Positions 16,363 through 28,525 are shown, counted from the first letter of the stretch. The stretch: DNA of 64,000 nucleotides from Salpingoeca rosetta (GCA_033442325.1 JAWQFM010000001.1:2649238-2713237), one strand, 5' to 3'. Translations and numbers: made by a program. The notes: a model not told the origin generated them from the letters alone.

Positions 16363-19365
<3,003 letters not shown>

Positions 19366-19568: not shown

Positions 19569-20340
19569 ATGGCCGCTGACTCTGGCGGCAATGGCGGGGG
19601 TGGCGGTTGTGGCGGTTGTGGCGGTGGCCGCTGTCGCAAAGCGCCCTCAAAGCCACCACTCATCAACATGAATGCTGTCTTCTTCATGGTTGTTGGTGCT
19701 GTCGCTGGCATAGTGCTGGCCTGTCCTTGTCACGTCTTTCCAGGAGCTGCAGCCGCAGCCGCAACCACCTCAGCGACGACAACGCTGGTCATGTCTGCTG
19801 GCTGGAGTGGGCATGTGCTTCCTCCCGAGTCGCGCGATGAGGGCGAGGGTCGTCCTTCCTTGGTGCTGTCCTCTCGCCAGCCGGCAGGCGACATCGTGTT
19901 TGGGCGGGTGCTGCCATCCTCGCCAAGCGACCCGTTCCTGGCGGCCTTTGGCATTCAGGAGTATCTCACTGCCATGCGGCGGCTGAAGCCAGCCTGCGTG
20001 CTGGCAGTACATCCTCTTGACGCTCGTGCAGCAAGCCAGCAGCCTCTTTTTTCGCCGCTGCAGCGTCTGCCGTGCACTACGTTCTCCGCCACCGTGAACG
20101 ATACCCTCCGTGTGTACACGCGCACCCAGGACGGTGTCACCCTTCATGTGTTCTCCGTCGCACCTTCGGACTGTTCCGGTGAGCTGCAACGAACGCGCCA
20201 ACGAGATGAAACGCTCCCCTTTGCTCGCTTGCTTCTTGCTTGGCTGCTTGGCTGATTGGCTGTCTCAGCGACCACCTTCCGAGCTTGTTGCGCGCCTCAT
20301 GCTGTGCACTTCCCACAGCATATCTCTCTCTCTCTCACAC

Positions 20341-20427
<87 letters not shown>

Positions 20428-22674
20428 CACACACACACACACGCACACACGCACACACGCACGCACACACACACACACGCACGCACGGAAACCCCTGCTT
20501 CCTGTAATGTTTGCCTGCAGGCATTGAGAGCTCCACAACGTCCGCCTGTCTTCGGGTCGCGGCTGACAAGGTGCCTGTCTTGCTTGTTTGCTTGCTGACA
20601 TGTCTGTGGGCCCTGTGCTAGGAGACAGCATGCGGCTGTTCCCAGACGCAGTCAGAACTGCACGCTCCATGCATGCACCCAGTGGCACGCCTTCTTCTTC
20701 GCTCACCTGGGTCCTCTCGCCTGCGCACGGCATGCTTGCTTGTTTCGTGATGGCAGCTGCTTCAAGCCGGCGCCGAGGCGAGCGCCACAAGCAGTGACGG
20801 CGTCAACGTTCTTCTGTCTTACTTCCCCCCGTCCATCACCGCCCAGCTGATGGAGAGCGTACAGGCGTCAATGACGTTTGCGGCGGCTGTGTCGCGTGAC
20901 ACCTCAACACGGGCGCCCACTTCCCAGCAACCTCTTACATTTGCCGGTGATGTCACACACGCAGTGTGGCTACCAGACACAGCCGAGCTGACACTCACGC
21001 TCGCCGTCACAGGGAATAATGCTTCAAATGGCATCGTCCTCAGCTGGTCGCGGTCGCCCTATAAGCCGCCTGCCTGCCCCACGTCGGCATCGTCCAGTGA
21101 CGCTGCTGATGCTGCGCTGTGCGACGTCATCGCCGAGGAGACACAGCGATACGGGCCCGGCATCGATGCGCAGCTCAACTCATCCACCCGTACCTTCCCA
21201 GCACCGGCGTGGCCAGAGGCGACTTGCGGGTAAGAGCGGTGCAGTGGCGTGCCAAGTGCAAGCTAGGCTACCTTGTCGCTTACTCGCTTGCCTTGACGGT
21301 GACAATCAAGCATAACATAGTCCAGACTTGCAGAGCATCGCGTGTGACAATGCTCAGACACAACCACACAGACAGACAGACACGCACAGACACACACACA
21401 CACACACAGACGCACAGGCGCACACACGCACGCGCGCGCACAGACACACATACACACACAGACACACACACACACATGCATACGTTCATGGACAGACGAG
21501 CCCAACAGACAATTATTGAACCGACTGCTATATTGTGCATATCTTGCCTCTCTCACTCGTACCCTTACATGTGCACTGGTGCGATGTTTCTCCCCTGCAC
21601 CATCTTCCCTGCCAGCTTTTATGGCTGCCAGACATCGCGCTTGCTTGGCCGCGCCCTGAGCACTCTCCTCGGTTGCGACATTGCAATTCTGCCAGCAACT
21701 GCAACATTCCTTCAGCTGGGTATGCTCCAGGGCACAGTACACCTTCAGGACTTGCAACAAGCGCTGCAGCACCACCGCATCGCCGTGGCCTGGCTGAGCG
21801 AACTTCAACTCGTGCGGCTCGCCAGCGTCGCGCTGTTCACCGATGCCCTCACCTTTCCCGGCATGGCCATCGCCACGACCGCGCAGGGCGAGCGTATCAT
21901 CGACGTGGCGTTTGCCGGGCGCGCGTCGTCCACGGGCTTTACCGCCGTGCACCGCGTGTGCGTTCCACACAACACGCTTACCACGACAGTGCGGTCGCAT
22001 GTTGACCAGACCCCAATAGCCATTCCAGCGGACACCACGCTCGGCGAAGGTGCGTGTGTGTGTGCTGCGCAGGACAAGATGCCATGATGACATAGAGATG
22101 TGGTTACATTAGGGAGATGCTCATGTCGTGATGAGTGTGAAGTGAATGAGTGAATGAAAGATGAGTGCAGGCGACGACAGGCTACTTTCTCCTTCGAATG
22201 AATGTGCTTGGTTTTTCTTGGACTCACGCGAAAAGACTGCATTTTTGGCTTTTCCAGTGGTCTTTGCGTTTCTGCGCGGTGTGAATGCCACAGAGCCTCT
22301 GACGTCGGCACCCGAAACAAGCGCGGTTGATCGGCCAACGAGCGCCAACAGCCGCGTCTGCGCATATGTCCACAAGTGGACGGCACAGGCAGCCACCATC
22401 CACGACACATGCACAGGATCTCAGGCGCTGACGTATTGGGAATGGCACATCACTCCACCCGGCCCAGCTGCAAGCGTGCAAGTGGCGTTTGCAGGGGCAC
22501 AGCTTGACCCGGGCACCCTCTTCTCCATGACCACGCCTCGATGGCCAGTTCCCCTCCACGGTTGCAGGCCCACTGTCTCCGTCTCATTATCGCACAACAT
22601 CAGGCGACATCCTCCCCGTCACCCTCAAGCTCCTCTCCAAGGTGTGTGCGTGTGTGCGTGTGTGCGTGTGTGTG

Positions 22675-22716
<42 letters not shown>

Positions 22717-25700
22717 TGGTGTGTGTTGACACTGTAACTGTAGACAGGGTTACGACCGCTCGCGCCAGGTTGGCCTGGGCGCTTAGTCATCTATCGTCGT
22801 ACAGTGAAAACGACAGCTTAGGCCTTTTACTCCCCGGTTCATCCTAGACCGAGCCATGTGTCTTGCGATTTGACGGGCCAGAGCGTAAGCGTGCAGGTAA
22901 GGACGAACGAGAGGCCAGGTGTGTGTGTGTGTGTGTGTGTGTGTGCATGTGTGCGTGTGTGCGTGTGTGCGTGTGTGTGGGAGGTTGTGATAGGGTAGAA
23001 GTGCCAGCCCCATGAACGATGACGACTGCACATCACTGCACAACATGTCACACCGCCACACTGATAATCACTCAACATGCCTGCCTCACCACTTGCAGGA
23101 CCTGCGCGTGTCGCTGCTGGCGCTGGGTGATCCTGGCCTCCTTCCTGTCACCATCACGTACACGTCCTCTCCCCTCTGCCCCGCCGGGTTTGAGTCTGCC
23201 ATCAACGCGACGGAGACGTGCGTGAGGTGTTCACCAGGAACATTTCGGGCATCGGCCACGGAGGAGACCAACACATGCGCTCCGTGCGCGCCCGGAACAC
23301 ACGCGCCAGAGCCAGGCGCCACCACATGCAATCCCTGCCCACCTGGTACGTTGTTACCTGCCTCTATGCGCGGCGACATCACACACACACACACATATCT
23401 GCAAGCGTCCACGCGCACGCAATTACAAACACGCACACACACACACACACACTTGCACACACACATTCACACACACTTGCACACACACTTGCACACACAC
23501 ATTCACACACACGCACATCCACGTACACACACACATATGCACACACACACATTCACATACACACATTCACAAACATACACACATACACACACACACATAC
23601 ACGCGCTCATCAACACATTTCCCCTTCTGACATTGCAGGGTTTGCTGTCCAAGAGGCCGGCGCGGAAGTGTGCAAACCGTGCAGCGTTGGCACGTATGCA
23701 GAGACGCCAGGCCACGCCAAGTGTCTGCCTTGTCCGCCCGGCTCGAGCCAGGCGCTGATAGGGCAGCCAACATGCACGCCATGCGAACGCGGATTTGCTG
23801 CCGCAACTCCCGGTCTCATCACCTGCACACCATGTCCACCAGGCACTCATGCAGCAAGCAAGGGCACGGTCACGTGTGCGCCGTGTGCGCCCGGAACTTT
23901 CGCTGCAACATCTGCGCTGGCTGCGTGCACTCCATGTCGGGTATGTGGAACAGAGAAACGGCTGGCTCAGCTCGAGCAAACACATCTTCTCAGATACAAT
24001 CGTGCATCCAGATACACACACGCCCACACATACGCCCACACATACAAAAGCACACGCACACACATGCACACACACGCCCACCGTATGCATTCATGACTCA
24101 TTCCCACTCCACACCTCCGCTCCAATCCGATTCGTGTTTTTTCCCCTGCAGGGGCCGGATGTGGCACTTGATTTCGTCGGCGAGTTCACCAATGAGACTG
24201 GCAGCGCCGTGTGTCGTGTTGCCTCCGCCCGCGGGTTTGGGCGCACTGATTTCAACACGTGCACAACAACGGAAAACGCGTGCGAGTGTTTGCCTGGGCG
24301 CCTGCCACCAGACTGCAAACTGCCACCCATCTACCTCGACTACGACAACGGCGTGGCCATCTTGCTGGTCACGTTCAACTGCATTGCACTGACCATCACC
24401 ATCGCTGTTGCCGTGCTGTTTATCCGGTGGCGCAACCACGTCGTTGTCAAGGGCACGTCGCTTGTGTTCTGCCTGCTCATCCTCCTTGGCATTGCCATTG
24501 GGCTGTGCACCGTGTTTGTGCTGGTGGGCGAGCTCTCCGACACGCGGTGCACGCTGTACGCCTGGCTCAACGCCATGTCCTTTGCCTTCATCATGAGCAA
24601 TCTCCTGGTCAAGACATGGCGCATCTACAAGATCTTCTTCTCATCCCTGAGTGAACAGCAGCAGCTCGACCTCTCCGAGACGCGCATGATTGTGCGCGGG
24701 CTGACATATGTGGCCGTGCAGGCCATCGTGTTGGGTGTCGTCACCTTGCTCTACCCGATTCGCACGGAGGTTGACCTGATTGAGAACGACCCCTTTGCTG
24801 AGCGCCGCCTGGTGTGTGGCGATGGCTTGGAGGTGTCCATCACCACGCTCCTGTGCAACCTGCTCTACCTGGGCATTGGGTTCTCCTTGCTGTACAAGAC
24901 GCGGCAGGTGCGCACAGACCAGTTTGGCGAGAGCGCGTTTGTGATTCTCGTGCTGCTCTTCTCCGGCGTGATTGTTCCGGGCGTGGCGCTGACGCTGGGC
25001 ATGACGGGGCGCGCTCGCCTCCTCTTCAACATCATCTCCACGGGCATGACATCCGTGCTCGCACTCGGCACCATTTTCTTCCCCAAGGTGTACGGCGTTG
25101 TCTTCAATGAGTCGTTCGCGGGCGACGAGTTCCTCACTGATGAGACTGCTGTCAACACGCTGGATGGCGGGTTCTTTGACGGCACCGGTGGTTTCCGTCG
25201 GGAAAGCATGTACCCGTCTCGGCGTGGCAGCCTGCTACCCTCTCGTCGCGAGAGCATGTACCCAGCCCGCAGCCCACGGCACTCCGTCTACTCCAACCGC
25301 AGCAACCGCAGCAGTGCTCGCAAGAGTGACTTTGAGCTTGCCTTCTTGCTGGAGGATGCGGCAACCGCAAATGGCGGTGGCGGCGGTAACAGACGTGCAG
25401 GCCCCACGCTGACGGTGGATGATGCACATATTGGATGGAAAGGGCAGCACAGTCACAGTCGCAGCGCACGCCCACCGATTGTGCTGAGCGTGGGCTCCAG
25501 CCAGGAAGAGGACAGCGACAGCAGCGATAACGAGCGCGTGCTCACAGTGCCGTGCAATTCCACGTCGAAACCGCAGAATGGCGGTGGTGGCGGTGGTGCT
25601 GGTGCCCACTTTATGGTTCGTGTCTTTGATGAGGATGAAGATGTTGAAGACGGAAGTGGTGCTGGCGCCTGCAGTGGCGGTACAACCAAGCCTGAAGTGA

Positions 25701-28525
25701 GAATTGAGAATGGTGGTGGTGGTGCAGATGATAGTGACGACGATGACGGTGACGGTGACAGTGATGATGTGCAGCCCAAGACGGACAAGAACAAGCAGCC
25801 AGAACGCCAGGATGCCGCTGCCGAAATCGCTGTTCATGATGGCGACGAGGAAGCAGACACGAGAGGGAGCTGTCACGCTGCGCAAGCTGGTGGTGCTGGG
25901 CTGGGACGGAAAGGCGTGACCAGAGGGAGCGAAGCAGAGCGCCCACAGAGCTCCGACGATGATGCGAGTACGCGCAGCGAACCCCAGCATGGTAGTGGCG
26001 GCGAGGACGGCCAGTTGCCCAAACATGGTGGACAACAGGGCCGAAGACGACGAAGGAGAACAAACAGAAGCGAGCGGCGTGGCGGAAACAGACGCAAAGG
26101 AGCGAGGACGAGCGCCGACTCATCCATCTCGTCCTCTCCGCCATCGTCGTCGTCACTTCTTCCCACCGGTGACAGCGAGACTGAAACGCGTGGCGCAAGT
26201 AGTGAACGCGATCAGCAAACGCAGCACCGGCAGGAGCGTCGGCGTCATAAAGGCAATGGCGATGAAGGCCAAGGTGGTGGTGACGATGATGTGGATGCGG
26301 TGGAGCCAACTCGTTTGGTGGAAGTGCTTAGCGCAGGAGAAGCGCGGTACATTGAAGCGCTGCTGGTTCGCCAGGTGCAGGCGTTGGGGTCCGAGAAGGT
26401 GACGGCGTTGCTGTCGCGGCATGCGCAGAGGAATCGACACAACCACATGCGAGGACAGGCGTCTCTTCCGCTCTCTGCTGCACAGCGGCCGCGTGGCCCT
26501 GACGGCAGCCATCACCATCCCAACCGTGTGCGCTCCCTTCAGCACGAGGGTGGAGCGAGAGTTGCACTGGAGGACCTACAGCCGTCACGCGAAGACCACC
26601 AGCAGCAGCATCGTGTTGGTGGTCATGGGCAGCGCGACAGAGACTACGGGAGTGGCGATGACAGGAGGCGCCGTGACGCTGACTCTGGCAGCCATGTCAG
26701 CAGCAGCAACAGCGGTAGCAGCGTCAGCGCACGTGGTGGCAGTGGCCGCGTCGTGATTGGCGAACGGGCACGCAAGCTGGCGGCACGAATGAACGAGCAG
26801 GTGCGACAGCGGGCGATGACAACACCGAGTCGCCCGCGTGGAACAGCAAACGCAGCAGCTGCAACATCACCATCATCGTCGTCGACACGTCGTCGTGGCG
26901 GCGATGGCACCGGAGGCGGTGGCAGCAACCGCAACAGCGGTGGGTATGGTGGTGGACCGTCTGAGTACAAGGCCGTGTTCCGCTACACGAACAAGGTGAC
27001 GGGCTTTACCATCTATGCTGGGCAGACGCTGATTGCGTACGAGCCACCGAGGCAGCGGCTGGTGGTTGGTGTTGTCAAGGAGACGGGCGAGCGAGGCGCA
27101 GTGCCGCTAGCGTTTCTTGCGCACTTGACCACACCCCACAGCACCAAGCGGCAAACCTCTTCGCTTCGATCACAGGTGAGTTGCGACATTGCACTATGTA
27201 GCAAGGGGTGATGTTAATCGTGGCACTGTTGTGTAGTGATGGGGTTGCGTGTGTCAATTTGTGAGAGAGTGTGTGGTGTGTCTCAATTAATTTGTGAGAG
27301 AGTGTGTGATGTGGGTTTGTGTGTGTGTTGGGTGTTGTCCTTTGCGCGCACACTGCGGCACGTGTTGCACGCGCTCTTGCTCACGCGGAGAAACGCCCGT
27401 GCCAACTACACACACCGCACACATACACACACACATACACACACACGCACACAGAATTCGCGTGTGCACGACGACGCGGCGCCCCAAGGGAGTATCCACC
27501 GCACATCGCAGAGTCTGCGTGAGACGACATCGTCCATCACGGGCGCAGATGTGGGCGATCGGCCACTGGCGCGGTCACAGAGCGCCAAGTCTGCAGCAGA
27601 AGCGAAGCACAAGCCCAGGAAGAAGAGCAAAAAGCGCAGCGGGGACGCCCACGGCGAGCGTGGTCTTGGTGATGATGATAGCGACGATGATGACGAAGAT
27701 GACAGTGTGCAGCACACGCGCAGCGGCACGTTTTTGAAGACAGTGAAGCGGGCACTGCGCCGCAACCGCACCGGCAGCAACAGCAGGAGGACCGCGAGGA
27801 GTGACGGGGGCGGCGGCGGACGGGTTGTGCACCGCATGCAACAGCGATCCATGGACGCGAGTGCAACCGGCGCGCGCCGTCAGGCCCACGCGCAGATGGG
27901 GATGGCTGGCCAGATACGGTCACGATCGAACACAACAACAGCTGCGATGGCACCGCGCCGTGCACGCTCACAACAGTACCAACAGCACCGTCAGCAGATG
28001 GGCGGAGAAGGCAGCGGCGAGCAGAGGTCGCTGGCGATGAGGAACCAGTGGGGGTCGGCTGTCTCTCGGGCGCCAGCCATGTTTGGTGCTGTTCAATATC
28101 CACAAGACCACGCATGCGCATCGACGCAACGCAGCAGTGGTGGTGGTGGTGGTGGCGGTGGTGGTGGTGGTGGTGGTGATGGGAGTGAAGGCAGCGATAA
28201 TGTTGATGACAGCGATGATGGAGCATACACTGGCTTTACTGGGCTGCAGCAGTTTGCTGTTGGCAGTGGTGACGAAGGGCACATGAGCGCAAACGAGGCC
28301 CGCAAGACACGAACAACTGCTGCGGACGGCAGTGCTTGTGGTGGCGGTGTTGGCGGTGTTGGCGAGTGGATGATGACGGAGAGTGAAGCAGGTTGGTTGG
28401 CGCAGAAAGGATTCAAGCGGAACGCAGCGTTTGTCGGTGCAAACCAACGGCTTTCTGTGCGCGGGGAGCAGCTGGTGAGTGACGACGACGATGATGACTG
28501 GGATGAGTGCGAGAGTATGATTTAA
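19569..28525 (+). CDS. Class C (7tm_3) GPCR with a degenerate 5'-nucleotidase-like ectodomain, CUB-like segment, Cys-rich (GCC2/GCC3-type) repeats, long disordered tail and SH3-like module
   Basis: Signal-like [18 protein letters not shown] (ATG 19668; alternative ATG 19569). CxxCxPGT repeats at 23176-23940. The 7TM region (about 24345-25105) has class C hallmarks [37 protein letters not shown] and IFFPKVY. Large exon 24151-27175, last exon 27455-28525. One junction near 22550-22850 is unresolved. Confidence 0.85.

Follow-up and report, generated by a model that had tools for sequence, protein, structure and literature searches.

A predicted class C receptor gene of Salpingoeca rosetta with a probable divergent 5'-nucleotidase C-terminal-like domain and no detectable Venus flytrap

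Which ectodomain precedes the seven-transmembrane (7TM) domain of a class C G protein-coupled receptor (GPCR) in a choanoflagellate is the question raised by a stretch of Salpingoeca rosetta DNA (GCA_033442325.1, JAWQFM010000001.1:2649238-2713237), which comprises 64,000 nucleotides and is called the window throughout. An initial annotation made from the sequence had described positions 19668-22310 as belonging to a class C GPCR, in which the Venus flytrap is replaced by a catalytically dead ecto-5'-nucleotidase of the CD73/UshA type. These positions have been found to cover exons 1-4 and the first part of exon 5 in a predicted gene of nine exons on the plus strand (19668-28525, Table 1), whose borders follow the GT-AG rule throughout and whose phases are consistent. 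The class C assignment has been confirmed, as 7tm_3 (PF00003) is matched at 24335-25087 over profile positions 1-251 of 251 with 136.6 bits and an E value of 1.5e-39, above the gathering score of 33.5 bits given by Pfam. We consider it likely that this is one gene with nine exons, whose product would be a receptor ~2,160 residues long. The predicted protein would begin with a signal peptide and an N region of ~260 residues, followed by a divergent 5'-nucleotidase C-terminal-like domain with the linker helix in front of it, a small all-beta domain, about eight Ephrin_rec_like CxxC units, the 7tm_3 domain and a long disordered tail.

The evidence for the 5'-nucleotidase-like domain has come from profile-profile comparisons with hhalign, in which templates built from the 5'-nucleotidase genes of 26, later 53, proteobacterial genomes and cut to the C-terminal domain have been aligned with a query of 215 residues, the C-terminal part of the proposed fold (C part) together with its aligned ortholog (a 2-sequence profile). 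With the 53-sequence template a score of 34.4 has been reached (P 8.1e-5, probability 61%), query positions 2-207 being aligned to template positions 1-201, while the 26-sequence template has given 23.9 (P 0.0054) and an independent 27-sequence template 21.9 (P 0.015). All three alignments run from end to end, and they keep the register of the initial annotation, whose proposed 5'-nucleotidase motif order has thus held for the C-terminal part. The score climbs with template depth, from 23.9 to 34.4, at an alignment identity of just 11%, and the significant match spans residues ~301 (window position 21096) to ~506 (to ~22307), including the linker helix. None of 236 real-protein decoys compared with the 53-sequence template has reached 34.4 (maximum 23.3; Gumbel fit 3e-5), nor has any of 300 shuffled controls (150 column shuffles with a maximum of 18.5 and 150 block shuffles with a maximum of 23.3), and the reversed query has scored 12.9. 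The match has also been found to be specific, with P values of 0.13-0.37 for the C part against templates of the Metallophos half, Peripla_BP_6 and the class C ANF domain. Significance has been reached only with the domain-restricted comparison and the deeper template: hhalign with the entire ectodomain as a single-sequence query has not been significant, and in a first, permissive run of the C part the score of 24.4 has been equalled by 5 of 153 real-protein decoys. By the curated Pfam threshold the C part is no family member, and we read it as a remote homolog of the 5'-nucleotidase C-terminal domain. Exon 3 has been tried as a second C-terminal-like copy and has been rejected (score 9.5-10.2). 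In exon 1, the stretch 19884-19990, which ends in QEYLTAM, resembles the GxIT...PF...YL stretch of the UshA C-terminal domain (AGDISYKNVLKVQPF...IDYLTAV); at an hhalign P of 0.04, which is not significant, a second degenerate copy at this place is unsupported.

The substrate-contact residues of UshA, among them R375, R379, R410, F429 and F498, which hold the phosphate and stack on the base, are replaced in the hhalign alignment at low single-column confidence, R375 by E, R379 by G, R410 by Q, F429 by H and F498 by N, with D504 in a gap. Within this confidence, the loss of the phosphate-binding arginines, as anticipated in the initial annotation, has been recovered. UshA F380, the Phe that follows the first Cys, has been retained, and the C-x-F-x-x-C motif in which it stands has the spacing found in CD73. 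Because the nucleotide-holding arginines and phenylalanines of UshA are lost, the 5'-nucleotidase-like domain is probably a non-catalytic binding module. The only Pfam-level 5_nucleotid_C match of the genome lies on another contig (G000:C11:447879-451079; L003/L004), in a multi-exon gene with a GGHDH motif upstream, and this gene probably encodes the genuine enzyme.

When the whole genome (55.4 Mb, 68 contigs) has been scanned with the 7tm_3 profile, this locus has been the sole match, and no class C GPCR locus besides it appears to exist there; exon 4 is likewise single-copy. A search of 1.84 billion representative proteins with exon 4 has brought up a single relative (P0001, E 2e-9), and a repeat search seeded with P0001 has returned only P0001 itself. 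P0001 is encoded on a Logan contig of 1.8 kb, together with the exon 5 ortholog and with the intron position conserved. The sample has yielded another contig, on which Ephrin-like repeats are found along with a 7TM exon of 73% identity (P0124). No match has been obtained in a metagenome scan, and a UshA search and scan of genome contigs has returned near-identical enterobacterial proteins only. The closest annotated relative is MONBRDRAFT_24906 of Monosiga brevicollis (53% identity), whose public gene model begins only at the last large exon. Upstream of this model (L134:8048-9950 of CH991549.1) we have observed unannotated exons with a clear signal peptide, directly followed by a homolog of the beta domain and then by Ephrin-like repeats. 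As no 5'-nucleotidase-like exon has been detectable in the 9 kb upstream, the Monosiga ortholog seems to be devoid of the entire N-terminal 500 residues, with the N region and the C lobe.

Several results weigh against a 5'-nucleotidase-like domain in an intact receptor gene. Pfam and HMMER have been blank on 5_nucleotid_C, and the remote homology is seen only from profile to profile, because a plain hidden Markov model of our own template gives 1.8 bits even with filters off. The query profile holds only two sequences. Against PDB sequences, phmmer with exon 4 has yielded chance matches only, and so has the 2-sequence profile. The structural check with AlphaFold and Foldseek, which the initial annotation had named and which has been run on exon 4 alone, has failed to lend support, as the AlphaFold2 model is unreliable (predicted local distance difference test, pLDDT, 42) and Foldseek has found no match to it at E<=0.001. 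Exon 5 moreover contains a frameshift in the window, a change by one base that falls between 22530 and 22537 when compared with the ortholog (L002), which keeps a single frame throughout; if the frameshift were real, the gene would be broken. Exactly four of the seven sampled words (31-mers) of 22485-22585 are present in each of 20 short-read runs out of 20 (7 studies), which fits one assembly indel and suggests an error of the assembly at 22530-22537, not a broken gene. The blank results of HMMER, Pfam, PDB sequence search and Foldseek, to which feature searches in the ESM Atlas with exons 1, 3 and 4 (no usable match or noise) may be added, would together with the low identity also be expected from a lineage-specific fold that matches 5_nucleotid_C by chance or by a convergent alpha/beta resemblance. 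We regard this explanation as improbable, since the score lies far beyond three types of null and rises with template depth, the domain is covered from end to end, and two groups have reported 5_nucleotid_C in related receptors (Krishnan et al., 2012; Garcia De Las Bayonas et al., 2025, the latter by its main text). An extremely divergent Venus flytrap of the periplasmic-binding or ANF_receptor fold is hardly credible, although this domain is usual in class C receptors and a few chains of the periplasmic-binding type occur, without significance, in the Foldseek output for the low-confidence model of exon 4. ANF_receptor has no Pfam match in the ectodomain, and every part of it, compared by hhalign with profiles of Peripla_BP_6 (22 sequences) and of the class C ANF domain (3 sequences), has given P values of 0.13-0.74, whereas the positive control of ANF versus periplasmic-binding profiles has reached a probability of 97.8%. 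The initial annotation had named such a match as one of the results that would speak against it, and its proposal of a receptor free of a Venus flytrap has withstood the comparison; at the level of profiles, it is supported that this class C GPCR has no detectable Venus flytrap.

Compared with this, the first ~300 residues of the ectodomain pose a separate problem. They had been taken in the initial annotation for a degenerate Metallophos lobe, so that the ectodomain would be a complete two-domain 5'-nucleotidase (Metallophos lobe, linker helix and C lobe) that closes about its hinge as a clamshell in place of the Venus flytrap. The C lobe and the linker helix are supported, as described above, and the N region (residues 37-299, ~263 residues) is compatible in length with the N lobe of CD73/UshA, which has roughly 290-320 residues. 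Under a permissive setting the alignment of the C part extends co-linearly upstream to UshA position 67, and in the M. brevicollis ortholog the N region and the C lobe seem to be missing together, as though they formed one module. The upstream extension has brought no gain in score, however (32.1 to 32.9), and the N region has been compared with the Metallophos half at P values of 0.09 and 0.34, depending on the template and in a register other than the one proposed before; hhalign has placed ACVLAVH on the IIAATH strand, unlike the initial annotation. This test has little power, there being no ortholog sequence for the exons of the N region. The canonical DxH, GNH[DE] and GHxH metal motifs are absent in the sequence as read, Metallophos has no Pfam match on the 5' exons, and the genome scan with PF00149 has produced 22 matches elsewhere and none at this gene. 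The part of exon 3 before residue ~301 has matched neither C-terminal nor N-terminal templates of 5'-nucleotidases, and in their passages on such receptors both published reports (PMC12716839, PMC3251606) name 5_nucleotid_C only, with no mention of Metallophos. The N region as a degenerate Metallophos domain is not supported, and because this half is unsupported, the two-lobed CD73-like clamshell is not supported either; we hold such an ectodomain to be unlikely. The stronger proposal, in which a complete and catalytically dead two-lobed enzyme activates the receptor by a CD73-like domain rotation that replaces Venus-flytrap closure, is a little more doubtful still. One may finally ask whether exons 1-5 constitute the gene of a separate secreted protein, unjoined to the 7TM exons, as the late start of the public M. 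brevicollis model could be taken to indicate. This is very improbable given that all phases fit, that no stop codon occurs before exon 6, and that the two contigs of the relative derive from one sample. The 5' exons are tied to the receptor by exon 5, in which the 5'-nucleotidase-like domain ends and which also encodes the beta domain; in M. brevicollis this beta domain comes after the signal peptide of the receptor and directly upstream of the 7TM orthologue.

The preferred reading, a receptor with a remote 5'-nucleotidase C-terminal-like domain, is placed on the exons of Table 1. Every peptide quoted in the initial annotation has been located where it had been placed, and the junction 21229/21616 has proved to be a canonical, correctly phased GT-AG splice. 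In exon 1 the predicted protein starts with a hydrophobic signal peptide, which runs from residue 1 to residue ~26-36, and exon 2 is the sole solution that preserves the frame from exon 1 to exon 3. Pfam has had no match on exons 1-5 and none on exon 9. The ninth exon, ending at 28525, is probable: the long open frame of exon 8 contains a consensus GTGAGT donor 33 nucleotides ahead of its stop, from which an intron of 279 nucleotides has been predicted (27176-27454).

Table 1. Exons of the predicted receptor gene, in window coordinates.
Feature	Position	Strand	Content
Exon 1	19668..20178	+	ATG at 19668, GT donor at 20179; start codon, signal peptide, first part of the N region
Exon 2	20521..20570	+	50-nt micro-exon of the N region; AG/GT borders
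Exon 3	20757..21229	+	AG/GT borders, phase 2 end; remainder of the N region (to residue 299), linker helix, first Cys of C-G-F-Y-G-C
Exon 4	21616..22049	+	Core of the 5_nucleotid_C-like domain
Exon 5	22258..22641	+	End of the 5_nucleotid_C-like domain (to ~22307), then all-beta domain (~22359-22641)
Exon 6	23099..23345	+	CxxC repeats, Ephrin_rec_like (PF07699) 31.2 bits; splice borders identified
Exon 7	23639..23940	+	CxxC repeats, Ephrin_rec_like (PF07699) 51.1 bits; splice borders identified
Exon 8	24152..27175	+	Juxtamembrane Cys-rich stretch, 7tm_3 (24335-25087), long low-complexity cytoplasmic tail; GTGAGT donor at 27176
Probable exon 9	27455..28525	+	Tail end and stop codon; AG acceptor 27453-27454 in phase with the 27176 donor, open frame to 28522

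Between the 5'-nucleotidase-like domain and the Cys-rich repeats, a domain of ~95 residues (22359-22641) has been kept in all three species, with the conserved elements C-A-Y-V, Y-W-E-W and PPx. In the ortholog, AlphaFold2 has predicted nine strands for exon 5 at low confidence (pLDDT 42.6), and as a guess this beta domain may be called CUB-like. The repeats that follow exceed the Pfam cut-off for Ephrin_rec_like (23.1 bits), and NCD3G remains below its cut-off of 38.9 bits with 23.1 and 30.6 bits (the latter in exon 7), in overlap with the stronger Ephrin_rec_like matches. In the cytoplasmic tail, a conserved C-terminal module stands within a long low-complexity stretch; this module (26936-27175, labelled SH3-like) is alike by eye in the Logan relative and in M. 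brevicollis and has no Pfam match. The surrounding window is eukaryotic in character, with ~56% G+C and introns rich in (CA)n. Upstream of the gene, exon-like open frames on the minus strand (17630-18709), an example of which is cupin/JmjC-like by eye, suggest a divergently transcribed neighbour that has the intergenic region at 18.8-19.6 kb in common with the receptor gene. The minus-strand orientation of this neighbour (17.6-18.7 kb) makes it plausible that the gene begins with exon 1.

Regarding known systems, the combination of domains has precedents among the unicellular relatives of animals. Choanoflagellate Glutamate Receptors have been reported, in the main text of a recent catalogue, to carry 5_nucleotid_C and Ephrin_rec-like domains that are absent from the metazoan ones (Garcia De Las Bayonas et al., eLife 2025, PMC12716839), and a glutamate-family GPCR of Capsaspora owczarzaki, EFW44378.1, bears 5_nucleotid_C under the Pfam accession PF02872 (Krishnan et al., PLoS One 2012, PMC3251606). 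The statement of the initial annotation that such an architecture is not known from animals is accordingly correct, yet for unicellular relatives it has already been published in these two papers, the former as judged by its main text. The present gene combines 7tm_3, Ephrin_rec_like repeats and, by our reading, a 5_nucleotid_C-type domain in a choanoflagellate, and like the receptors described in the main text of the catalogue it has no ANF/NCD3G module. Because the genome has a single 7tm_3 locus, the gene is probably the entry of this species in that catalogue, whose main text gives domain names only and does not discuss lost substrate-binding residues, the N region or the beta domain, nor that M. 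brevicollis lacks the module. EFW44378.1, compared by description, likewise belongs to a unicellular relative of animals and has 5_nucleotid_C fused to a class C 7TM, but in the present gene the domain has been detected by profile-profile comparison only. The linker helix and the C-terminal alpha/beta domain align from end to end with those of UshA/CD73, from which the receptor differs by its fusion to a GPCR and by the lack of a detectable Metallophos domain or metal motifs. As in the metazoan mGluR, CaSR and T1R receptors, a large ectodomain and a cysteine-rich stalk precede 7tm_3; unlike in these, ANF_receptor is not matched, NCD3G stays below its cut-off, and the stalk consists of Ephrin_rec_like CxxC repeats. 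The rigid cysteine-rich stalk would relay a signal from the 5'-nucleotidase-like binding module to the 7TM domain, and in this it would parallel the cysteine-rich domain of metazoan class C receptors.

Since the domain combination is already published, the gene is a confirmation and not a discovery. What it adds is statistical support for the 5'-nucleotidase-like domain on this very gene, the apparent loss of all canonical nucleotide contacts, and the absence of a whole N-terminal module from the Monosiga ortholog. If the two-lobed clamshell were true after all, a sensor of this kind would have evolved independently in the closest relatives of animals. As the genome resembles that of a choanoflagellate amenable to genetics and appears to have a single class C locus, one knockout could show which role a glutamate-family receptor had before the Venus-flytrap/NCD3G design of animals.
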